A stretch of 64,000 nucleotides of DNA from Basidiobolus meristosporus CBS 931.73 (taxonomy: Eukaryota > Fungi > Basidiobolomycota), in NCBI GenBank assembly GCA_002104905.1, contig MCFE01000116.1:62001-126000 (forward strand), in the 5' to 3' direction. Below the pieces are notes generated by a model. That model did not search any database, had not been told where the DNA came from, and worked only from the letters and a program-made list of their open reading frames with translations. Position numbers and translations under genes: made by a program. Positions 5,099 through 63,209 of the stretch are shown one piece after another. Each line of letters begins with the position of its first letter. Position 1 is the stretch's first letter.

Positions 5099-7714
5099 TT
5101 ATTTTAATTTCATACTGATATTCATAGAAGCCATAATGTGAGAGAACGATATCAACGAATGGGAAACTTCTTTATTTATAGTTTGTCCGTTGCAAACAGG
5201 ACACGACAGATGTGAGATCGGGAGCATTATTTCACAACTTTCACACCACCCAACCTTTTCCATATCGCTTTGCGCAATAATATTATGCATTGTATCTGAG
5301 GCACCATGGGCAATCAAACAATCCATTTCCATTTCTCCGAATCTTAAACCGCCACCTTTGGATCTTCCTGAGACAGGTTGGCCACTAAAAGAACTTCTTG
5401 GACCAGAAGGAATTCGGACGTGAATTTTGTCCTTAACCTGATGCTTAAGCGCTAAATAATACACGACTCCAACAGAGACAGGTTCTTGTATCATATTACC
5501 GTACATTCCGTTGTACACATACTCGGCATCATCCTTGAAATTAAATATATCCTCATCAGCCGTAAATGGCGTTCCATCTTTCGTATATCCATGTATAGAA
5601 CAATCTTTACCAACCAAACCTTCCAAAAGTTGCCCAATCGTCATACGTCCAGGAATAGCATGCGGATTAATAATTATATCAGGCACGATACCATCTTCCG
5701 TAAATGGCAAATTTTCCTGTGGCAGAATAATCGTGACGACACCTTTCTGCGCATGTCTAGAAGCAACTTTGTCACCAACTTCGATGTATTTATGAAAATT
5801 GGTGATAACCTTGACGTGCCGGCGTTTAGAATGTGAGACCTCGGTGACCCTACCTTTATCACATTTGACGACCCGAATTTTCTTTTCGGTAATTCCATCA
5901 ACTACGGTACATAATAGGTCACCATCTTCCAGTACGCCACCAACCTTTGGAATACCATTTACATATTTAGTTTCATCAAACATTTCCCCGGTTACAATAA
6001 TTTCAGATTCGTCACCCAAAAGTTCACAAACGTTGACATGTCGGGTAAAAGATCGAAACAAACCGCGGTCAACGGCAGATTTGGAAATAATAACACCATC
6101 TTCTTGGTTATATCCGGTATAAGATTGTATCATCACGACCAAATTAACCCCGTTGGGTTGTTCGTCCATTTTTAATAGATCATAAACAAATGTATCGACC
6201 AATGGCACCTGGGCATATTCCAAAAAGTTTGTATCACCAGAAGTAATGGTAGAAGGGGAGTAAAGTTGCATACCTTGTTTGATCATGGCAGAAGCAAAGA
6301 CATTACGCGCAGACTGGTTGTGGTTGGCATAGGGGACCATAGAGGCAGGAATACCCATCATAACCCAGGGGTGAATTTCCATGTGAGTATACGTAGGATG
6401 GTGTCCATGATATCCGATGTCACCCAGGGTGATCTGGGATTGTTCATCAGGATCGACGAATTCTATCTTGCCAGTTTCTAAAAGAGAATCCCAGGAGAGA
6501 GAATTTAATTCGTTCCAATCTATAGGTGTGCCAGAGAGTTTAAAAAGTGGTCTCATAAATCGGCCGGAAGAAGTTTTGATGTAAATAATTCTGGGGATGG
6601 GTTTGTAATAGAGGACAGAGATCATGGGATGAATTTGTTTGAGTGTGTTTCGAAGATGTGCCAAGGTGCCACCATAAAAGCCGATGATGTACCCGTCTAA
6701 GAGGACAGGATGTTTGACGTCACAATCGTCGTAGGATAAATTATTTTTTAACCAAGTTTGAGCTTCGAAAAATTTTTCATCGGAGATGGTAGAGAGCAAA
6801 CAAGTGAGGGCGAGATGTTTGATAATACCGACGTTTTTGCCTTCGGGGGTTTCGCAGAGACAGACGTAACCCAACTGGCTGGGGTGAATGGCTCGCATGT
6901 GAATGTTAGAAGTGTTTTCGTCACAGGGGACGATAATTTTGCGAACCATGGAGAGTTCGTCGATGGTGGATTTGCGCGAGACCAAGTTAACCATTTTGGA
7001 ATAGATTTTGCCGTGTATAATTTGTTGACCTTCTTTAAGCATGGTAAAGAGTTCATCCTCCAAAAAAGTTTGCAGACGACTTTCGGTGTCAGAGAGTTTG
7101 ATGGCACGAGATAAGATTTGGTCTAAAAGGATATTGGAAGATTTGCCGAGTTTGTTACCATAATCATCACGATCCATGGGTTGGAGAAGATCCATAGAGG
7201 TCATAAGGGCGAGATAAGATAACAGGCCGAGGGTATAGACGACGCTATATTTATCTTGCATGGGGAAATATTTGGATTCTAGAACGTGTAGATCTTCGGG
7301 GGAGATGGTGTTTTCAGATTCGGTCATGGAGGCCAAGAAGATGGTGGAGAAAGTATTTACGTGAGAACGGTTGGCGACGAGGAGGGCGAGTATTTCGTAA
7401 ATTTTACCGAAGTCGAAACCGAGATTGTTCATGATCCAATAGACGGACAAGCGCTTAACACCATTAAGATCTTTGTGGGTGGAGGAGACGTCTAGATAAA
7501 GGTCAACGGAATTTTTAACGCAGACACGTAATGGGAGAAGGGAGCCCCGGAAGCGGGTTTCGCAGGAGACGACATTATCAGCGGCGGAGACGTAGGGGAT
7601 AAAGATGTTGCGTAATTCTTGAATAAGGGGGACACGTTCGATGCCATCGATGATGTAGTATCCTCTGTGGTTAATAAGGGGGAGTTTGCAGACGAGTCGG
7701 CTGTTGTGGTGCAT
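5099..7714 (-). CDS. rpb2: DNA-directed RNA polymerase second-largest subunit (RPB2-like), intronless and divergent, probably from a large DNA virus
   Basis: Motifs GYYIIDGIERVPLIQE, CETPEGKNVGIIKHL, HNQSARNVFASAMIKQ, GYNQEDG, GDKVASRHAQKGVV, PDIIINPHAIPGRMTIGQLLE, GLRFGEMEMDCLIAHGA and a C-terminal CxxC...CxxC. Family identity is certain from the motifs; viral origin is inferred. Confidence 0.93.
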   Translation of the reverse strand: MHHNSRLVCKLPLINHRGYYIIDGIERVPLIQELRNIFIPYVSAADNVVSCETRFRGSLLPLRVCVKNSVDLYLDVSSTHKDLNGVKRLSVYWIMNNLGFDFGKIYEILALLVANRSHVNTFSTIFLASMTESENTISPEDLHVLESKYFPMQDKYSVVYTLGLLSYLALMTSMDLLQPMDRDDYGNKLGKSSNILLDQILSRAIKLSDTESRLQTFLEDELFTMLKEGQQIIHGKIYSKMVNLVSRKSTIDELSMVRKIIVPCDENTSNIHMRAIHPSQLGYVCLCETPEGKNVGIIKHLALTCLLSTISDEKFFEAQTWLKNNLSYDDCDVKHPVLLDGYIIGFYGGTLAHLRNTLKQIHPMISVLYYKPIPRIIYIKTSSGRFMRPLFKLSGTPIDWNELNSLSWDSLLETGKIEFVDPDEQSQITLGDIGYHGHHPTYTHMEIHPWVMMGIPASMVPYANHNQSARNVFASAMIKQGMQLYSPSTITSGDTNFLEYAQVPLVDTFVYDLLKMDEQPNGVNLVVMIQSYTGYNQEDGVIISKSAVDRGLFRSFTRHVNVCELLGDESEIIVTGEMFDETKYVNGIPKVGGVLEDGDLLCTVVDGITEKKIRVVKCDKGRVTEVSHSKRRHVKVITNFHKYIEVGDKVASRHAQKGVVTIILPQENLPFTEDGIVPDIIINPHAIPGRMTIGQLLEGLVGKDCSIHGYTKDGTPFTADEDIFNFKDDAEYVYNGMYGNMIQEPVSVGVVYYLALKHQVKDKIHVRIPSGPRSSFSGQPVSGRSKGGGLRFGEMEMDCLIAHGASDTMHNIIAQSDMEKVGWCESCEIMLPISHLSCPVCNGQTINKEVSHSLISFSHIMASMNISMKLK

Positions 7715-11552: not shown

Positions 11553-12437
11553 ATGACTTACTCATCTGAATGGTCTTTTCTCATCAATCCCATCACTACC
11601 ACTGGATTTCCTTTTGACACACTGGAGGAGATCTATACTGAGTACTGTGGACCATCAACCCCAATCTGCTCAAGGAGATCCCTTGTTAAGCTTCTCTGCT
11701 ATTACAAGAACTATTGCCCTACAAGGTTTCATCCCACAATCCATGGCAACAAAAGTCCTAGAAGCTTTCATTCCCAGCTGACAGCAATGGAGAACCACCT
11801 TGCAGAGGGTATGAATAACTTAGAGCAAGCTTGGAATACTAGGTTCAGAAGCTCCAATAGACTTCCATATCCCAGAGTGTTCAGCAACAGGTTCCATATC
11901 AGGAGTATTTTAGATACCTTCCCAGTGAGGATTAATAGACCTTCTAGAGGGCAGAGGCACTTTTATTCTGGCAAGTACAAGGCACACTGTGTGAAGTTTC
12001 AAGCACTGTCTGACATTGAGGGTAACATCATCTGGTTTAGTGGGCCATTTGCTGGAAGTAGGCATGACAAAGTACTCTGGGTAGAGAATCATCCTGAATT
12101 CAGTAGAGGGGAGAAATGTATGGCAGACTTAGCCTATATAGGAGAGGATTGTCAGAGATTAGGATGTATTACAGCTTATAGGAAGCCAAGGAATGGTGTG
12201 CTTAGCAGGAGGCAGAAGCTCTACAATGAGATATTTAATCATTTCAGAGTAAGGGTAGAGCACACATTTGGATATCTGAAGAGATTCAGCATATTGGCAG
12301 GTAAATACAGAGGAAAGTCATATATAGGAGAAAACAGCAGAATAGGTAAAATAGTTAAGATACTTATTAATGCACAGTATGTTCATACAAGAAGACATCC
12401 ACTGAGAGATATGTGTCTGGAGCATTATGAAGAGTAA
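11553..12437 (+). mobile_element. DDE_Tnp_4-family transposase (PIF/Harbinger-ISL2EU type)
   Basis: Motifs ILDTFPVRINRP, YSGKYKAHCVKFQ, GSRHD, MADLAYIG and RVRVEHTFGYLKRF. Intact 294-aa ORF; TIRs not identified. Confidence 0.88.
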
Positions 12438-16527: not shown

Positions 16528-17616
16528 TCATCTGTCTTCTAAATATTGTCCCCAATCAGCATCAGAGTATCCCACAAGATCCTGTTCTGAATCCTTATAA
16601 GTGTATCTTAAGCAGATATCAGCAGTTCCTTTTAGGTATCTAAAAATCCGCTTAACTGCTGCAATATGATCAGATCCATAGTTCTGATTATGTTGGCTGA
16701 CAACTACCAATGAATATGAGATATCTGGACGTGTTTCAAGCATGATATACATCAGACTGCCAGCCATAGATTGATAAGGAAAGTCAGGGCTTTCAGATGG
16801 CACCAAGCTCTCTTGATTTGGTTGAGTTTTGACCAAGTTAAGGTTTGTCTCCATTGGGGTAGCTGCCAGTTTACAGTCTTCCATTTGGTACTTCTTTAGT
16901 ACATCTTGAATATACTTGGATTGGCTTAGGGTGATAGTCTGGGTACTTCTGTCTATGGAGAACTTAATCCCTGAGTAGTAACTGAGTTCTCCTAGATTGG
17001 ACATCTTGAACTCTTTAGATAGGCTGAATTTAGTCTCTTCCAATGTTGCTAGGTTATTGGTGGCTATAATAAGATCATCCGCATATAGAGCTAATAGAGC
17101 TGGATTTGCTCTATCTGGCTTATAATATATACTATAGTCAGCATTACTTCTTTTGAAACTCAAAGATTCCAGATAAGAATCTATCTTGCAATTCCAGGCT
17201 CTTGGTAATTGTTTGAGACCATATGGTGACTTTTTAAGCTTGCAGACCAAATGGGGGTTATCTTGGTCAACAAACCCATCAGGCTGGTCCATATACAAGT
17301 CCTCATCAAGTTTTCCATTCAAAAATGCAGTTTTTACATCCATTTGATGAATAAAAAACTTATATTTGGCTGCAATAGCCAAAATTAACCTGATGGAATT
17401 AAACTTAGCTACCGGTGCAAAGGTCTCAGTATAGTCAAGTCCTTTTGTTTGAGAGTATCCTTTGGCTACAAGTCTTGCTTTGTATCTTTCAATTGTACCA
17501 TCAGCCTTGTATTTTGTCTTGACAACCCATCTGCATCCAATTGATTTTTGGTTGATTGGTAATTTGACTAAGTCCCAAGTTTGATTTTCCATCAGGGCCT
17601 GATATTCCTCAGTCAT
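16528..17616 (-). pseudogene. Copia reverse transcriptase (RVT_2) fragment
   Basis: YKARLVAKGYSQ, QMDVKTAFLNG, LYADDLII, YSDADW. Confidence 0.93.
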
Positions 17617-18093
17617 TGCAGATCTCCAAAACTTTGTCTGAGGGCTATTTAGGGCCTCTTTTACAGTCTGGGGTTTATAAATATGGACTGAATCGGCATA
17701 GGCTAAGTTTGTACCCTAATTGATATAGTAATTTGGGCTATTTCTTGTCCAATTGGATCACCAGGCATTTGATACTGGAACGATCACTTCTGGGATATTC
17801 CTGGGCACTGATTATGGCTGAACCACGGTTGTAGAGTCCTCTGGAGTGAAAAAATTTTCATTGTTTTGCTCTGATTCAATCCCAACAATTGGTGGATTTG
17901 AGATCAAATTTTTGTCATCATCTGATGTCATTTTTTGTCTAAATTAGGAATTTTCATCAAACAATGCATCCCTGGACTTGATCAGCTTCTTTGCTTTGGT
18001 ATTGTAGAGTCTGTATGCCTTACTCTCATTGCAGTAGCCCAAAAATATGCATTTTACACTTTTTGGCTCAAATTTTGACTGATTTCCAGCCAG

Positions 18094-18876
18094 TTATTTG
18101 GCATCTGCTGTACACCCAAATATTCTTAGATATTCTGCACTTGGTCTGTATCCATACCATGCTTCAAATGGAGTAGAATCACAAAGTATTCTGTTATAAC
18201 TCCTATTTTGAAGGTATACAGCAGTGGCAACTGATTCCGCCCAAAAATCGTAGGATAATTTTTGATCACAGATCATAGATCTTGCCATATCAATTATTGA
18301 TCTGTTAGCTTGTTCCACTACTCCATTTTGCTGTGGGGAGTATGGTAGAGTAGTCTCTTGCTTTATCCCATGAATTTTGCAGAAGTGGATGAATAGTTTT
18401 GAGATATGTTCTCCACCATTGTCAGAGCATATTTTCTTGATTTTTTCACCAGTTTCTCTCTCCACCATGGCTTTAAACTCCCTGAACTTAGACAGAGCTT
18501 CTTCCTTTCTCTCCATGAAGTAGACCCATGTGTATCTTGTATCACCATCAATAATAGTGATTAAATACTTTATCCTGCCTAAGGATAAATTTTGCATAGG
18601 TCCACACAGATCTGAGTGAATTAGCTCTAATTTTTTCTTAGTTTTGATTAACCCAGAGCTCTTGAACGGTTGTCTGGCTTGTTTCCCATATATGCAGGCT
18701 TCACAGTGCTCCAAATTAGCTGGGGGATCAGTTTTCACTCCAGATATTAGCTGATCTTTGATCATTTTACGCAAATAATCAAAATTGATGTGTCCAAATC
18801 TCCTGTGCCAAAGCATTGGTGTTTCTTCAATTAAGTTACTTATATTGGCTTCCAAGTATGATGGAATATAAGTCAA
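18094..18876 (-). pseudogene. Copia GAG-pre-integrase plus integrase core fragment
   Basis: LWHRRFGH, CEACIYGKQ, HSDLCGP, SDNGGE, PQQNGVVE. Confidence 0.93.
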
Positions 18877-18879
18877 CTT

Positions 18880-20076
18880 TTATAGATTTGGATCTCTGAT
18901 GCCTGAAGCAATATGGGCACCATTTTGGTCAGTGATCCTGCATCCAGAATTGTCAAAACTGAAACTGAGTCCTTCCGCTGTGACCTTGCTTACAGATAGT
19001 AGGTTCTTGGCTATTTCTGGTATATAGAGTACTTCTTTAAAGGTCAGTGTATGGCTTCCTTCACTGCTTCTAAGGTTTACTTGGATAGTTCCTTCTCCCA
19101 CTGCATCAAGTGTTCTATTGTCACCCATGAAAACCTTCTTAATTGGAATTTCTTGATATTGGGTAAAAAGTTCTTTTTGGTGTGTAAAGTGTTGAGAAGC
19201 TCCAGAGTCAATATACCACATCTGAGAATCCTTGTTTGTGGTCATATTTAGTGCAGATATGAATAGTCTGTCTTCAGTTGTTGCAGCATTTCTATATTCA
19301 GGCTTCTTTTGCTGATTATCTTTCTTTTTGAGACATTGGTCTGATGTGTGTCCTTTCCTTTTACAGTAGTTACAAAACAGGTTGCTGTTGCCTTTGTAGG
19401 GTCTTGGGTACCTCCTTTGTTGGTTATCAATGCTTATTAAAGCATTTTCTTCTTCCTTCTTATTGGCGCTTGATTTTCTTAATTCTTCATCCAGGAGCCT
19501 TCCATATACGTAATTTAAGGTCAAATCTTCAGTTCTGGACTCTAGGGCTGATACAAGGCCCTGAAACTTGTCTGTCAGGCTATTCAGAATGGTAACTATC
19601 ACATCTTCATCAGTAGTTGGTACGCCCACAGATTCCATCTCATGTACCAGCAGGGTAATTCTGTTAATAAGATTTTTCATTTCTTCTCCTGGCAGCATCT
19701 TTGTAGTAAAGAATTTTCATCTCAGATACATTTTTTTAGCAGCTGAACATGACTGGTAGGTGTCTTCTAATGCCTTCCAGGCATTCTTTGCCGTTTTTGC
19801 TCTTGAGCATTTAATTAGCAATTTGTCTTTAACATTATGGCAAATGCAGTTAAAGGCACTTTGTTCTTTCTTCTGGTACTTTAAGGCTTCCTCTCCCATG
19901 TTTTTAGGGAGGCATTCTTCTCCCATGACAATATCCCAAAGGCCTCTTTCTTGTAGCAGCATCTTCATCTTCACCTTCCATACTTGGTAGTTAGAGCCAT
20001 CCAACTTTTTAGCAGAGGGAAAAATTCCAGTAATAGCAGTAGTAGACATTGCAGAGAGTGACAGCTTGGGGCTCAT
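18880..20076 (-). pseudogene. Copia gag (zinc knuckle) and protease, split into two ORFs
   Basis: KLDGSNYQVWK, CNYCKRKGHTSDQC, WYIDSGASQH. Confidence 0.92.
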
Positions 20077-21265: not shown

Positions 21266-24200
21266 ATGAGCTACGTGGACGCATTTTTGGTAAACCAATT
21301 AGTTCAACTACAACCCACCTACCTTCAAATGGACCCTGCTTCCCCTTGCTCTCCGTTGGTATTTCCACCTCCATACTAAATCTTCCCTCTCAACCTTTGC
21401 CTTGCCCAGAATGAACGGCCCAAAGCCGCGTACGATATCCTCTCCTCCCGCCTAAAAGATGGGAAAGTGTTATTCGAGGAGATCTCCGAATGGTTTCGTG
21501 AGCGGTGAGTCATCCGAAGGGGGAGAGTGCCCTTGTCATCAAACCACCAACACTAATCCTTGCCAGGGCACAAATAGAGGAAGCCTATTCGAAGTCTCTG
21601 AGCAAGCTCGGCTCCAAAAGGCTCGGTCAGGAGTCCAATTTAGGGTAAGTTTGGGTTAGAGCCGTAACAGAATTGCCTACTCAAACCTTTCCTAGGACTT
21701 TCTCAAAGGTATGGTCGACGGTCATTGAGGAAACCAAGGAGGTGGCTGAGCTCCATTCGGAACTGAGCAAGGTCATAGCGGAGAAGATCGCCAAGCCGTT
21801 GAAAGAGCACGTCGTGGAAGATGAGCTTTGGAGTCATATTAAAAGTGTAGGTGGCACGCATAGCCTAGCATACCGATTCGGAATTAATCTGGTGGAATGA
21901 CAGCACGAACTACCTATCGCCAAAATCGTCAAAGAGTATGACGAGCGAATGTTGAAAGTGGCCAGGGTGCGTAGAGTCATATGTAGATGGTAGTAGTGGA
22001 AGCAGTAGTAACTGGTCGCTTTGCTGTTTTCATGTCAATAGGCCAAAAAGGTCGCGGAGAAGGAGAAAACGGTTGGCAAGAAGGCCACCACCTCAAGTAG
22101 GCCAATCTAGCACCATTTTCACTGCTATGAGAATCTAATCATACGCCAAGTTATCAAAACACTGACCAAGGCCAAGGAGCCGAAACTAGACGATAGCCAA
22201 AGGGCGTTGGACGAGACTATTCACAAATGGACCAGCGAGGCACCTGCTCTGATCGAGGTGAGCCAATCATGGATTTCGACGGCCTTCAACGGCAACTAAC
22301 CCCGCCCAGAAATACCATCAAATCGACCAGAAGAGACTGGAAACTCTCAAACAACATATGGGCACCTTTGCTAACGGAGTAATCGAGTTGTGCCAAAACC
22401 ATCTACGGGTAAGTCTCATTGATCCCTGATTGCCACGCAGACCACTTCATCTTGTCCATCCTCGGCCAGATCGGCGAAGTAACGTCGAAATCAGTGGAGG
22501 CGTTCGATGTTCAGCAGGAGATGGAAGAGTTTTGCTCCACGAAGAAGTTGGGAATCGAGCCACTTGGTAAGGCAAGCTTGAATGAACTCAATGTCATACC
22601 CCCGCTAACGCGCTTCCATAGCTTCACCCAGCGAACTGTCACTTGGTAAGCAATTTATTCGGAGATGAGAGAGGTCATGATAGCTGAACGTTGACTTTTC
22701 GAAGGGTACCACGCTTCCAATGCCAGTAAAAGCAGTATCACCGATGCGCAGAGCGTTAAAACAACGTATGTCCTAGAAGCATGTACGTCGTAGGTCATAG
22801 CTAACCCAAGACCCGTTGCAGGCATACAGATACCTCGGCTACTAACGGTGAAGTCGCTAATGGAGCGTCCCGAGCGGTGAGTTCTCTGATATTCCTTACG
22901 CACTCGAGTCATGCTAAATCCACATTCCAAGCCCACCATCGTCGTTGATGAAGAGGGCTATTCTGTACCTCCTGCTGAGAACTCCATGTGGAACCAACCT
23001 CCAGATTCCCCAACCGAAGAGCCTGACACCCCAGAGAATATTGAAGACCCTGAGGAGTAAGTCTTGCGCATCGCACTGACCGAAGCACCCCAGCCATCTC
23101 ACCCATCCATATCAGGCCAGATACCCCTCGAATGAAGATCGACATCAAGGAGAGCGCCATCACTGAGGAGCCTGAAGAAGCTGACAGGGCACTCTCACGG
23201 GTCAGCACCACACTTCGTTTGGTAAATATGTAGATTATGAGGTGACTCCTGGTTCTCCACGAAACTGAATTCCTGGAAATCTAGAAAAACACAGTCAAGC
23301 AAACCACCAGGGGCAGACGCGAGTAAGTAGATGCCAGCACGTCCACCTAGTAGGAAACACGGGCAATAACATATCTTGCCAGAACAAAGCGTAGGGTTTC
23401 CACCATCGACTGGGAGTCCAATTCGACCGACTCATTCCCGTCTTCGCCCAGCTCGATGTACTTCGAGGGAGGGAAATCGGAGTTTCCTTTCAACTCCGCG
23501 AACAGCCTACGAGGATTCAACTCGTCGCTTTCACCCAGAGCGGACGCCTTGAACGCAAGATTTTCCGTCATCAACAACCCGGCGTTCTTCATGTCGGAGC
23601 AGCCACTTCAGGTCAGAGTCACTGAGAATCTGAATGTTCTTTTACTTCCTACTGGAGAGATATCCAAAGTGTTCATCACTGGTGACATCGCCGTCCGAGG
23701 AAGTTACAGTGACGAGTCACCATTGAAACTGGTTGTGAAGGGCTACGAAGAGCTGGAAAAGAAGGTTCTCAACTATAAGCATGTGAAAGCGGATGCGGAG
23801 GAAGGGGTGTACTCGCTAGATAATCTCTCTCAGTTGAACAATCAGGAGGGAGCGCTGGTTCTCAAGTATCAAACGAAAATCGACCCGAATAGCCTTGGCA
23901 AGTATGTTCCATTGCTACTGAAGTCCGCATGGAAGTGTGAGGAGAATCTTACCTCTCTGGTGGTTCAATACAAACCCAACCCCGACTTTCAAACGGAGAC
24001 TGGGGAGTGGTCACTTAAGAATCTATCGTTCGTCTTACCGGTGGTGAATACCATCAATGTCCAATCCAAGCCAACCGGGGTTTGGAGTAATGAGAAGCAA
24101 AGGCTATTATGGCGAATGAATGATCTCAACTCCGACGAGGATGAACACAAACTGCTGGCTCGGTTCGAAACCACCGCCAAGGGAGCCCCAACCTCCATCG

Positions 24201-24328
24201 CTGCCAAATTCTCTTACAATGGGGCATCGGTATCGGGGCTAAATGTCCAGCTCAAGTCGAGCAGCAACCAGATTTTCGTGCAGACAGAGTATCGAACCAA
24301 TACCGGAAAATATATTCTAACCCCCTGA
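21266..24328 (+). CDS. SYP1: Muniscin family endocytic adaptor (Syp1/FCHO-like): N-terminal F-BAR and C-terminal mu-homology domain, multi-exon
   Basis: Spliced reading MSYVDAFL|NERPKAAYDILSSRLKDGKVLFEEISEWFRER|..IEEAYSKSLSKL (FCH motif), with GT-AG introns. Final exon gives VTENLNVLL...GDIAV...KYVPLLLKSAWKCE...SKPTGVW...KLLARF...GKY. Internal exon boundaries only partly resolved. Confidence 0.85.
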
Positions 24329-27232: not shown

Positions 27233-27357
27233 ATGAAGTTTATATATCTGCTTGTAGTTGGTGTCATATCGTTAGCAATGAAGGTAACGAGGAAGCACTG
27301 GAGAGGAAAGATCTGCTTAACCTTTATGGAGGATGGTTGTGGGGCCGTGTGAAATAG
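27233..27357 (+). pseudogene. Eroded precursor copy 2
   Basis: MKFIYLLVVG start; a shifted frame reads ERK-DLLNLYGGWLWGRVK*. Confidence 0.7.
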
Positions 27358-29373: not shown

Positions 29374-29598
29374 CAATGAAATGCTCAACTGGGTCTAATT
29401 CTATTGCCCTCTTTGAACGCTCCAATTTTGTCGCTTGTAACCCTCACCCATCCAATTTCCCAAGCTTGCCCAAACCTAAAGATTAGATTTTCGGACTTGA
29501 CATTCATGCATCTATATAAAGTAACCTGTCACGGTCTAAAATTGAGGCCATCACTGGATTGATTTCTACCCTCTGGTCAAACGGATGCTTTAGCGCTG

Positions 29599-29648
29599 GA
29601 CAAGGGAGATCTGAACGATGAAGTTGGTTCTATGGTCATGGGAGGCGC
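29599..29648 (+). pseudogene. Eroded precursor copy 6 (core relic)
   Basis: GACAAGGGAGATCTGAACGAT...TGGTTCTATGGTCATGGGAGGCGC aligns to the core DNA with a deletion. Confidence 0.6.
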
Positions 29649-30371
29649 AAAGACATTGCCAATGCTCATCAGATCGCTACCTCTTCTTTGCGCCTCCATC
29701 GGCAAGAAGATCCAACTAGTGCCCAATAGTGTACCACTTGACCATAATATCATCTGCGAGTTGTCTTATTTACACAATACCTGAGGCAAATCAACAATAC
29801 GCACATCCCTATTTGATTATGGTAGCATAGTTTTGGGTGGGATTTACCACCAATATCACTCATTCACTTCCATGAGAGGAGGCATAGCTCGTCATCATTC
29901 CTTTAGTCATGTAGCTTGGTGTTCAAGTGTAGACCTCTATAGTTGCATCATTGAATCCGATAATATATCGTTGCAACTACCTATATGTACTTGATAAATG
30001 TAAGCGCATAAGAAGTCTATCGTCAAAAACTAGAAATAAGTATATAATGGACGTTAAGACTACATTTGAAGAATATTTTGTGAGGGATAGGCTTTACAAA
30101 GTCTGCACAGTAAGAGAGCGAGATGATGTCAAGTGAATATACTGGTTGGCAATCAGGAAATCGCTTCCGGCTTTCCAAAATCAGTGTAGCCATAATCAGG
30201 GATTGGTAGCTACTCTGCTTCCAGGAATAAACATGCTATCACAACTGATTTGTATTTCCGCCAGGAGGGTTCTAAGAAGTGTAATATCAAGAGTATATAT
30301 AGTGCTTTTCAGCAATCTATATTCAGCAACACCCAGCCTTTGATATCTCGAGAAATTGGTATATACTACTC

Positions 30372-31373: not shown

Positions 31374-31577
31374 ATGAGACTCCTTGCTGTCCTCGCTGTT
31401 TGTATTGTTTCTGCAATAACAGCTAACGGCTATCCTATGGGTCAGCAAGCCAACGATGTATCCAAGGAGAAGAGAGATCTGGACGACTTTTGTGGAGGTT
31501 GGTTCTGTGGCCATGTGAAACGTGAACACACTATCCTTGACAGCCAGACTACTTCCTCTTCTCAGAGCTCACATTAG
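31374..31577 (+). CDS. Precursor copy 8 (B-type), variant core DLDDFCGGWFCGHV
   Basis: Intact ORF; His3 changed to Asp. Confidence 0.9.
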   Translation: MRLLAVLAVCIVSAITANGYPMGQQANDVSKEKRDLDDFCGGWFCGHVKREHTILDSQTTSSSQSSH

Positions 31578-32137: not shown

Positions 32138-32217
32138 TTCCGAGAATAATCTGGCTACAAGAACCGGTTTAGATTTCCGGTAGAGGATTCCGAGAAGTGC
32201 AGCACGAAGTATATAAA
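32138..32217 (+). promoter_or_regulatory. Representative A-type promoter: two TTCCGAGAA palindromes plus TATATAAA
   Basis: TTCCGAGAA at 32138 and 32188; TATATAAA at 32210, 77 bp upstream of the ATG. Equivalent motifs occur in the other A copies. Confidence 0.65.
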
Positions 32218-32286
32218 TGTCTCTTGCGCTGATGAGCATTCAGTAAAATACAGCTTTGACATTTGAGAGATCATTACCAAACAATC

Positions 32287-32496
32287 ATGAAATTCGCCGG
32301 CGTACTTGCTATTCTTGCCACTGTTTCAGTGACAATTGACTGCTACCCATTGATCCTGGAGACTAGCGATTCAGCAGTGGACAAGAGAGATCTACATGAC
32401 TTCTGCGGAGGCTGGTTCTGTGGTCATGTCAAGCGTGAGGAAGCTCCGGAGACAAGTGAAGCCAATATCTCCACCCCATCGATGTCAGTTGCCTGA
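32287..32496 (+). CDS. Precursor copy 9 (A-type)
   Basis: Canonical core; ATG after ACAATC. Confidence 0.93.
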   Translation: MKFAGVLAILATVSVTIDCYPLILETSDSAVDKRDLHDFCGGWFCGHVKREEAPETSEANISTPSMSVA

Positions 32497-33176: not shown

Positions 33177-33407
33177 ATGAGACTCTTTGCTGTACTCACT
33201 ACTTGTATCGTTGCCACAATGACAGCTAATGGCTACCCCGTAAATCAGGTGACTGATGGAGTAGCCATGGAAAAGAGAGATCTGCACGACTTTTGTGGAG
33301 GCTGGTTCTGTGGCCATGTGAAGCGTGATCACACAGTCCATGACAGTCAGACTACTACATCTTCTCTGAGCTCACATCAGCCTAACACCCTAATGACAGC
33401 TCAATAA
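33177..33407 (+). CDS. Precursor copy 10 (B-type)
   Basis: Canonical core. Confidence 0.93.
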   Translation: MRLFAVLTTCIVATMTANGYPVNQVTDGVAMEKRDLHDFCGGWFCGHVKRDHTVHDSQTTTSSLSSHQPNTLMTAQ

Positions 33408-46785: not shown

Positions 46786-47250
46786 GATCTGGAGACAAGT
46801 GAAGTCGAAATACCCACCTCACCTATGCCAAATCTCTAATGTGCACGGGCAGTATTAATAATGATACGATATTTCAACCCGAACTCACCAATTTTGTTGC
46901 TTCTGATAAACACTATGCATGATAAGCTAAGCGTAGCTTTCCATCCTCCGCATGGAATTTTGATTTTCTGATGGCTTTCTATGAAATAAACAATATAATC
47001 CCACGTTCCCAAGTTTCATATTGCTATTCAACCAGCAGAGTAAAGACCGCTCATATGTAATCCTATGCAATTTAGTTTCATGTTGACGAGGTGTCGCTAG
47101 TGAAGCTCCAACCAATCAGAATTGAACTCAAAGTATATCTTCCTGATATGAATAGTACTTTTGCTGTGAACTTGATATCGACATATGGTCACCGACCAAG
47201 ATTCCAAATATTCCCAAGAGTACTTCCCTCACTTGTGAAGCTACCAACCC

Positions 47251-49744: not shown

Positions 49745-50068
49745 ATGAAATTCGCCAGCGTACTTGCTATTCTTGCCGCTGTTTCAGCAACAATTGACTG
49801 CTACCCATTGATCCTGGAGACTAGCTTTGATATTTTGAGATATTTCTACAGAACAATCATGAAATTCGCCAGCGTACTTGTAATTCTTGCCGCTGCTTCA
49901 GCAACAATTGACTGCTACCCATTGATCCTGGAGACTAGCGATTCAGCAATGGACAAGAGAGATCTGCATGACTTCTGTGGAGGCTGGTTCTGTGGTCATG
50001 TTAAACGGGAGGAAGCTCTCGAAGCCAATGGAGCCATAACTTCAGCCTCAGGAATGCCAAATGCCTGA
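49745..50068 (+). CDS. Precursor copy 29 (A-type) with an in-frame duplicated signal peptide
   Basis: ATGs at 49745 and 49859, 114 bp apart; canonical core. Confidence 0.88.
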   Translation: MKFASVLAILAAVSATIDCYPLILETSFDILRYFYRTIMKFASVLVILAAASATIDCYPLILETSDSAMDKRDLHDFCGGWFCGHVKREEALEANGAITSASGMPNA

Positions 50069-59732: not shown

Positions 59733-59948
59733 ATGAGACTCCTTTCTGTACTCGCTGTTTGCATCATTTCTGTAATGACAGCTAACGGCTATCCTGTGGG
59801 TCAGCTAGCCAATGATGTAACCAAGGAGAAGAGAGATATGCATGACTTTTGTGGAGGTTGGTTCTGTGGCCATGTGAAACGAGAAGATGACCAGGAGTCA
59901 AGTAAAGACAGACTTCAGACCTCAATCTTGGATATGGCAAATATCTAA
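59733..59948 (+). CDS. Precursor copy 40 (B-type prepro, distinct tail), variant core DMHDFCGGWFCGHV
   Basis: Intact ORF. Confidence 0.9.
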   Translation: MRLLSVLAVCIISVMTANGYPVGQLANDVTKEKRDMHDFCGGWFCGHVKREDDQESSKDRLQTSILDMANI

Positions 59949-62630: not shown

Positions 62631-63209
62631 ATGACTCAATACCTGACTGCCATCCCAGTGACCAGAGAGAACTTCGCTCCTTACGGAGATGTGGTCTGCG
62701 CTCATGACGGGCCTTTCATCAGCGCTAACCAGGGTACTGCCCAACGCTACAACCACGTTGCCACCTGCACCAACAACCGGGAAACCGAGAAGTCCGATGT
62801 CCCCAAGGCGAACCCTAACTTGTGCGTGTTCCGATGCAAGCCAGCAACCCAGATTCCTTTCCCCATCAAGCTTCTTGAGCGTCACCCCTACTCCTCCCAA
62901 TGCTTCGTCCCCATGGCTACCGAGCGCCCATCCAAGGGGTACCTGGTCATCGTCGCGCTGAACGGAAAGGACGACAAGCCCGACCTCTCCACCATGAAAG
63001 CCTTTACCTTCGCACGCAACCAAGGCGTAAACTATGGAGCCGGAATCTGGCATCACCCAATGGTCGCCCTTGAGGAGCTCACCGACTTCGGCTGCATTGT
63101 GTGGGAAAACAAGGTCCCCCATCACGATTGCAATATTGTCGAAATCGGAGGTGACTACAAAACCCACATTCCTGGCTACCGCGCCGCCTCCCCCTCCACC
63201 AAGCTCTAA
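62631..63209 (+). CDS. DAL3: Ureidoglycolate lyase (allantoin catabolism)
   Basis: Motifs FAPYGDV, ANQGTA, LLERHPYSSQCFVP, QGVNYGAGIWHHP. Confidence 0.93.
   Translation: MTQYLTAIPVTRENFAPYGDVVCAHDGPFISANQGTAQRYNHVATCTNNRETEKSDVPKANPNLCVFRCKPATQIPFPIKLLERHPYSSQCFVPMATERPSKGYLVIVALNGKDDKPDLSTMKAFTFARNQGVNYGAGIWHHPMVALEELTDFGCIVWENKVPHHDCNIVEIGGDYKTHIPGYRAASPSTKL

Follow-up and report, generated by a model that had tools for sequence, protein, structure and literature searches.

A tandem array of single-core prepropeptide genes in Basidiobolus meristosporus predicted to encode a secreted, dibasic-processed 14-residue ring peptide

Introduction

The closest described systems to the genes analysed here are the Kex2-processed repeat proteins (KEPs), in which several short cores lie within one protein, and Basidiobolus meristosporus is the fungus richest in them, with 43 reported (Umemura 2020, PMC7329392). 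A second point of comparison is provided by peptides carrying the amino-terminal motif that binds Cu(II) and Ni(II) (ATCUN), an N-terminal X-X-His, such as serum albumin (DAHK), the Cys-rich hepcidin-25 (DTH...) and histatin-5 (DSH...) (PMC7701195, PMC6121404, PMC7232333). Whichever residues X and Z are, peptides of this X-Z-His form bind Cu(II) with a log K(7.4) of about 11-14.5 (13.8 for albumin DAHK), and a second His nearby promotes Cu(I) and redox cycling (PMC7701195). Here we describe a prepropeptide gene at positions 32287-32496 (+ strand) of a 64,000-nucleotide stretch of B. meristosporus CBS 931.73 (contig MCFE01000116.1, assembly GCA_002104905.1), hereafter called the window, together with the tandem array to which the gene belongs. 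An earlier sequence-only reading of this DNA had proposed that Kex2 cleavage of the precursor would expose an ATCUN site at the start of its 14-residue core, and that His3, Cys6, Cys11 and His13 form a second possible metal site. B. meristosporus shares the guts of amphibians and reptiles with bacteria and is an occasional cause of human infection, and to our knowledge the secreted peptides of the Zoopagomycota lineage are essentially unstudied.

Results

The gene at 32287-32496, copy 6 of the array and a member of its type A, is an intronless open reading frame (ORF) of 69 amino acids, the stop codon being included in these coordinates. A TATA-like box, TATATAAA, lies at 32210-32217, about 75 nt 5' of the ATG, and is seen in most type A copies. 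The precursor begins with a predicted signal peptide of 19 residues (32287-32343), whose cleavage site was placed by the −3/−1 rule rather than by a software predictor. In this heuristic reading, residue 2 is basic, a hydrophobic stretch of about 14 residues follows, and small residues occupy −3/−1 at the same aligned position in all types (V/C in this gene, A/G in type B, V/S or T/G in Basidiobolus ranarum); the next residues after the predicted cleavage position are always Y/L-Pro in types A and B and in B. ranarum. There follow an acidic and fast-evolving pro-region of 13 residues (32344-32382), an upstream Lys-Arg (KR) dibasic site (32383-32388, AAG AGA), the 14-residue core DLHDFCGGWFCGHV (32389-32430), a downstream KR site (32431-32436, AAG CGT) and a variable, acidic C-terminal tail that is presumably discarded (32437-32493). 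The core codons are GAT CTA CAT GAC TTC TGC GGA GGC TGG TTC TGT GGT CAT GTC (D-L-H-D-F-C-G-G-W-F-C-G-H-V). Read codon by codon, the core starts with Asp-Leu-His right behind the upstream KR and holds Asp4, Cys6, Cys11 and His13, as the sequence-only reading had it, and CGGWFC is a candidate disulfide ring. The computed monoisotopic mass of the 14-mer is 1589.62 Da with the disulfide and 1591.63 Da in the reduced form, and its computed charge is about −2 at pH 7.

Evidence on what is selected in this precursor comes from the variation among copies. The ratio of nonsynonymous to synonymous diversity (piN/piS), computed per region over 33 full-length copies, was 0.92 in the signal peptide, 0.63 in the pro-region, 0.026 in the core and 0 in both KR pairs; the upstream site shows not a single amino-acid change in the 33 copies. 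Indeed, different codons are used at the dibasic sites flanking the core (AAG/AAA; CGT/CGG/CGA), yet the amino acids that they encode are invariant. The KR-core-KR segment holds 20 synonymous variants, many of them at intermediate frequency, against 7 nonsynonymous ones that are all singletons, whereas the leader holds 57 synonymous and 93 nonsynonymous variants (Fisher p = 6e-4 between the two segments). The same contrast is found between the cores of type A and type B genes, with a proportion of synonymous differences (pS) of 0.65 and of nonsynonymous differences (pN) of 0.01. The core and both KR pairs are thus under strong purifying selection, and this pattern by region indicates that the selected product is the KR-bounded 14-mer. 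Conservation is about even along the core, and His3 does not stand above its neighbours.

Six-frame scanning with ORF tracing revealed 37 recognisable single-core prepropeptide genes in tandem at 26582-61172, all on the + strand, spaced by about 0.9 kb and with the ATG exactly 96 nt before the KR in each. Type A (MKF..., 69 aa) and type B (MRL..., 76 aa) genes alternate, the A-B pair having a period of about 1.79 kb, and each of the two types has its own ATG, signal peptide and TATA-like box, the type B box being CATAAATA. The type B gene next to the one described above (33177-33407, +, 76 aa), which has its own ATG and signal peptide, encodes a core identical to that at 32389-32430, and the cores are identical in 29 of the 37 copies. 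Two natural variants cited in the sequence-only reading both exist in the array alignment: a His3Asp (H3D) core, DLDDFCGGWFCGHV, at 31476-31517 (+) in copy 5 (its copy 8), a type B gene otherwise intact, and a Leu2Met core, DMHDFCGGWFCGHV, at 59835-59876 (+) in copy 36 (its copy 40). The higher copy numbers used there are accounted for by two decayed relics, one at the upstream array edge (27294-27353, +) and one at 29591-29693 (+), and by two partial duplicates at 47250 and 49745. Other core variants of the array are F5L+W9S, G7A+G12D and G7R, and copies 2, 15 and 19 are broken; deletions disrupt two of these, and the remaining one has a stop at Cys11. The DNA pattern of the core gave 15 matches at ≤3 mismatches and none in 100 shuffles. 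In the whole genome of B. meristosporus the family exceeds 50 genes, at least 37 of them in the window.

GenBank annotates only two models over 20 kb of the array, and a word-based protein search returned three public gene models of the family, all from B. meristosporus and all mis-built: the first splices a type A gene to the type B gene that follows it, the second lacks part of the signal peptide, and the third has a partial duplicate fused in. The two-core database protein P0001, for example, corresponds to a type A gene joined to the next type B gene. We also observed that the first part of a type A gene is duplicated over 114 bp at 49745-49939, which creates a fused ORF of 100 aa; the database protein P0002 is this very fusion and resembles an artefact.

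An exhaustive profile search over 1.84 billion representatives recovered relatives of the family only in Basidiobolus; the best score in a look-alike search of the ESM Atlas was 0.83, too low to be informative. Basidiobolus ranarum has many genes of the same subfamily (subfamily 1), on small contigs and in both orientations, usually with two cores each (DLHDLCG[G/R]WFCGHT) flanked by KR, KKR or RKR. His3 is present in 23 of 23 of these cores and Asp-Leu-His-Asp in 22, the remaining one reading DLHA. The cores of the two species differ at positions 5, 8 and 14, and the leaders of the peptides are only about 40% identical. A ureidoglycolate lyase gene at 62631-63209 (+), 94% identical between the species, serves as a syntenic anchor: B. 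meristosporus and B. ranarum alike have their peptide gene or genes immediately upstream of it on the same strand, and this common neighbour makes the window array orthologous to the B. ranarum peptide locus L003.

Profile and word searches also revealed a second subfamily, a single-copy paralogue at a conserved locus that is distinct from the array locus and adjoins a Cyt-b5 fatty-acid desaturase and a bestrophin in both species. Its cores follow the pattern FWNMR[Y/F]Y-CGG[W/F]xC-x-H-x, are preceded by KR or RR, and terminate with KR, with R-stop or with the stop codon alone, so that paralogues place a stop codon at the very boundary marked by the downstream KR of the array genes; one protein, P0010, contains three KR-flanked cores. 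These flanks and stop-codon ends corroborate both of the termini predicted for the mature peptides. Since the arm of subfamily 2 starts with F-W-N, what is constant across the family is the Cys-x4-Cys ring (CGGWxC) with its x-His-x end and not X-X-His; in the predicted peptides, X-X-His goes with the N-terminal arm and is therefore a feature of subfamily 1 only. The present comparison adds the second subfamily, the orthologues in B. ranarum and their synteny.

Several degenerate elements were seen beside the intact cores. Inside the subfamily 2 precursors (L072:8720-9262, L073:4341-4850 and L005:6794-7423) there are degenerate LWNKxxxC-x-G-x-x-C repeats that lack dibasic sites. The last element of the "GG-type" precursors of B. 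ranarum (L004, which is JASJQH010001080.1, and L003:18-428) is a third and degenerate one, GLDRFCGGWFC-stop, that has neither a preceding KR nor a Gly-His tail; Asp stands where His3 would be, just as it does in the natural B. meristosporus H3D variant. A degenerate pattern made of the ring and Gly-His matched 65 loci in metagenomes, all judged to be chance matches, none having KR or DLHD flanks. Two proteins from a JGI metagenome, P0009 and P0012, matched the family profile solely through a C-G-x-VKR end; they represent an unrelated KEP-like secreted protein with six GGRLGFCGPPGAPCGKVKR repeats, mislabelled as a molybdate ABC transporter component.

The Pfam scan of the window ORFs returned matches to RPB2-like, transposon, muniscin and ureidoglycolate lyase sequences only, and Rfam and tRNA scans of the 64-kb window gave no match. 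The last exon of a muniscin gene (FCH and mu-homology domain, Syp1/FCHO-like) lies directly upstream of the array at 23456-24328 (+; L001:1-2042). Further upstream are a copia-type retrotransposon with gag, integrase and RVT_2 (16528-19698, −) and a DDE_Tnp_4 (Harbinger/PIF-like) transposase (11553-12437, +). The observed/expected CpG ratio is 0.63 in the array and 0.76 in the neighbouring host gene region, and falls to 0.15 in the transposon block, far under the rest of the window. An intronless ORF of 871 aa at 5099-7714 (−) contains RNA polymerase Rpb2 domains 3, 4, 6 and 7. Its CpG ratio of 1.04 sets it apart from the DNA around it, and long AT-rich tandem repeats flank it at 1.9-5.0 kb and 8.8-10.5 kb; in appearance it is a virus-like gene that has been inserted.

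Discussion

Taken as a whole, the comparison of copies, species and subfamilies argues that the array specifies a real, strongly selected peptide that is encoded in bulk and predicted to be secreted. We propose that this product is a dibasic-processed ring 14-mer in which the ring and the x-His-x end form the functional module, and which works extracellularly, as a ligand or antagonist supplied at high dose; we give this reading a probability of roughly one half. According to this proposal, the precursor would enter the secretory pathway through its signal peptide, a kexin-type protease would cut after each KR, and a Kex1-type carboxypeptidase would then remove the C-terminal KR. A disulfide between Cys6 and Cys11 would close the six-residue ring CGGWFC, and the anionic 14-mer would be set free in bulk, showing a constant ring and x-His-x end on an N-terminal arm that is specific to the subfamily. 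Such a peptide would most likely act outside the cell, as a signalling peptide or as an inter-organism effector. Three points weigh against this proposal. First, a survey of the subtilases of six Entomophthoromycotina reported S8B kexins only in Conidiobolus incongruus (PMC6169396); the case for dibasic processing is made here from the comparative behaviour of the dibasic sites, whichever protease acts. Second, a charge of about −2 at pH 7 is atypical for membrane-active antimicrobial peptides. Third, Asp-Leu-His-Asp was kept across species while positions 5, 8 and 14 changed, a pattern that would fit a selected metal site too.

This last point leads to the alternative that survives best, in which Cu(II)/Ni(II) binding by the freed Asp-Leu-His is the selected function and the peptide is a ribosomal metallophore or a copper-redox antimicrobial, comparable to hepcidin-25 and histatin-5, with His13 aiding Cu(I)/Cu(II) cycling. 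We consider it unlikely, although it is chemically sound. The sequence prerequisites of the ATCUN site are present in 36 of the 37 window cores, the single departure being the H3D copy, and in all 23 cores of B. ranarum; position 2 is never Pro, being Leu (CTG/CTA/CTT) or, in one copy, Met. From the invariant KR, and from the KR or RR that precedes the paralogous cores, we infer a free alpha-amino group at Asp1, two residues before the His. Since the substrates of Ste13-type dipeptidyl peptidases are X-Ala and X-Pro, Asp-Leu should stay untrimmed. If released as predicted, the peptide would very likely bind Cu(II) and Ni(II) in vitro. Moreover, no segment is better conserved between the two species than DLHD, the affinity of X-Z-His peptides for Cu(II) is picomolar or tighter with a nearby second His favouring Cu(I) and redox cycling (PMC7701195), and Basidiobolus invests in metal acquisition, as its expanded siderophore repertoire indicates (PMC7466969). 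An anionic peptide also suits a chelator better than a membrane-lytic peptide.

However, the comparison with subfamily 2 divides the original ATCUN proposal: its sequence prerequisites hold in subfamily 1, but the paralogues, with the same ring and His end, start with F-W-N in both species and lack X-X-His. Within the core, His3 is no more constrained than other positions, and an intact gene with the H3D change exists. A given position is expected to be His in roughly 2-3% of random peptides, and with one peptide family it cannot be shown that X-X-His as such exceeds chance. The metal-dependent role that had been suggested is not reflected in the promoters either, since the yeast-type metal motifs Mac1, Zap1, Aft1, SreA/Fep1 (GATA-siderophore) and MRE were absent from the type A and type B promoters scanned, and no such motif is common to both types. 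One candidate, an Ace1/Cuf1-like HTHNNGCTGD match (CTTGCGCTGA) at −64 in 14 of 16 type A promoters (e.g. 32221-32230), was rejected as evidence: type B promoters lack it, its position is downstream of the TATA box, it amounts to one observation in duplicated DNA, and it carries no statistical weight. ORF-level Pfam scans and gene calls showed no metal-handling gene, whether transporter or reductase, flanking the array or the related loci. The literature searched likewise contained nothing relevant on ATCUN together with Kex2, in fungal Kex2-processed peptides or in fungal secreted peptides at large. We therefore rate Cu/Ni binding by the predicted peptide as an auxiliary or incidental property rather than the reason for its existence; as a function, metal binding is plausible chemistry but unproven. 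More doubtful still is the bolder form of this idea, that the release of a ring peptide switches on an Asp-Leu-His Cu(II)/Ni(II) site and that we are dealing with the first fungal peptide metallophore or with a copper-redox weapon of the vertebrate gut. Set side by side, the peptides of the two subfamilies and the natural H3D variant of subfamily 1 offer an experimental handle for telling a metal-dependent role from a ring-dependent one.

The ring peptide that we favour is a plain disulfide with a free N-terminus. Alternatively, the core could belong to a ribosomally made peptide modified after translation (RiPP) that receives a further modification, for example a Trp-Cys or other cross-link, before or after its release, in which case this simple form would not be the product. 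Invariant KR-flanked cores combined with fast-evolving leaders are a hallmark of fungal RiPP and Kex2-processed repeat precursors (PMC7329392), and the Trp of the core sits between the two Cys. Nevertheless, we hold this scenario to be improbable, as no gene for a modifying enzyme lies in or beside the array, and its units of about 0.9 kb contain no conserved extra ORF having a Pfam match. The syntenic neighbours are the muniscin, the transposons and the ureidoglycolate lyase, and the subfamily 2 loci are flanked by the desaturase, the bestrophin and RNR. In particular, ORF-level Pfam scans and gene calls, which intron-rich genes could escape, detected near the window array and the related loci none of the DUF3328/UstYa oxidases or tailoring genes that characterise dikaritin-type systems (ustiloxin, asperipin).

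The second metal site claimed in the sequence-only reading corresponds to another alternative, in which Cys6, Cys11 and His13 of the reduced peptide, perhaps joined by His3, form a thiolate/imidazole site for Zn(II) or Cu(I) and the peptide works as a secreted mini-metallothionein or zincophore. Cys6, Cys11 and His13 are indeed the only side-chain ligands that are invariant in both subfamilies and both species, and the precursors show a weak Pfam match to a zinc-binding RING-like model (zf-RING_13) over the C-x4-C-x-H stretch. This match, which we judged to be due to chance, scores 15.9 bits against a cut-off of 25 in real single-gene products, passes only in a chimeric gene model, and extends to residues past the KR cut. 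More importantly, such a site needs free thiols, whereas exported two-Cys peptides are normally oxidised to the disulfide by oxidative folding in the endoplasmic reticulum, and three ligands in a 14-mer make a weak, non-selective site. We thus see this second site as very improbable. Finally, it is hardly credible that amplification has merely produced a selfish or largely silent repeat here, with a peptide that serves no function at present: almost no copy is annotated in GenBank and some copies are broken, but synonymous changes far exceed nonsynonymous ones in the core and KR sites, the core is retained behind leaders that have diverged, in both species and at a syntenic locus, and the CpG content of the array is unlike that of transposons.

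How, then, does the proposed ring peptide compare with known systems? In design, it recalls urotensin II, in which a variable acidic arm is attached to an invariant Cys-x4-Cys ring with aromatic residues and an essential Lys. The Basidiobolus peptides likewise have a Cys-x4-Cys ring, with Trp and Phe, a short tail and a variable arm; this is a resemblance of design only, as there is no sequence relationship and their ring lacks the essential Lys. With albumin, hepcidin-25 and histatin-5 the core shares Asp1, His3 and a residue other than Pro between them, and, as in these peptides, its motif would be exposed only by proteolytic maturation. The likeness is closest to hepcidin-25, in design and not by descent, with X-Z-His placed closely before a disulfide-forming Cys. 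Unlike these ATCUN peptides, to which it has no homology, the Basidiobolus peptide has a sister subfamily without the motif and is predicted to be anionic. The nearest parallel is with KEPs, including the precursors of alpha-factor-type pheromones, which also combine a signal peptide, fast-evolving spacers and identical short KR-bounded cores. In the accessible part of the supplements to the KEP survey the core string was not found (PMC7329392), and no occurrence of CGGWFC was found in the literature. The B. ranarum orthologues, with two cores per gene, and the subfamily 2 paralogues, such as P0010, have the ordinary multi-core form of KEPs. B. meristosporus does not place several cores within one protein; unlike KEPs, it repeats whole intronless genes, each with one core and its own promoter, more than 50 times in tandem. 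If made as predicted, the 14-mer would be among the single fungal peptides with the highest gene amplification known.
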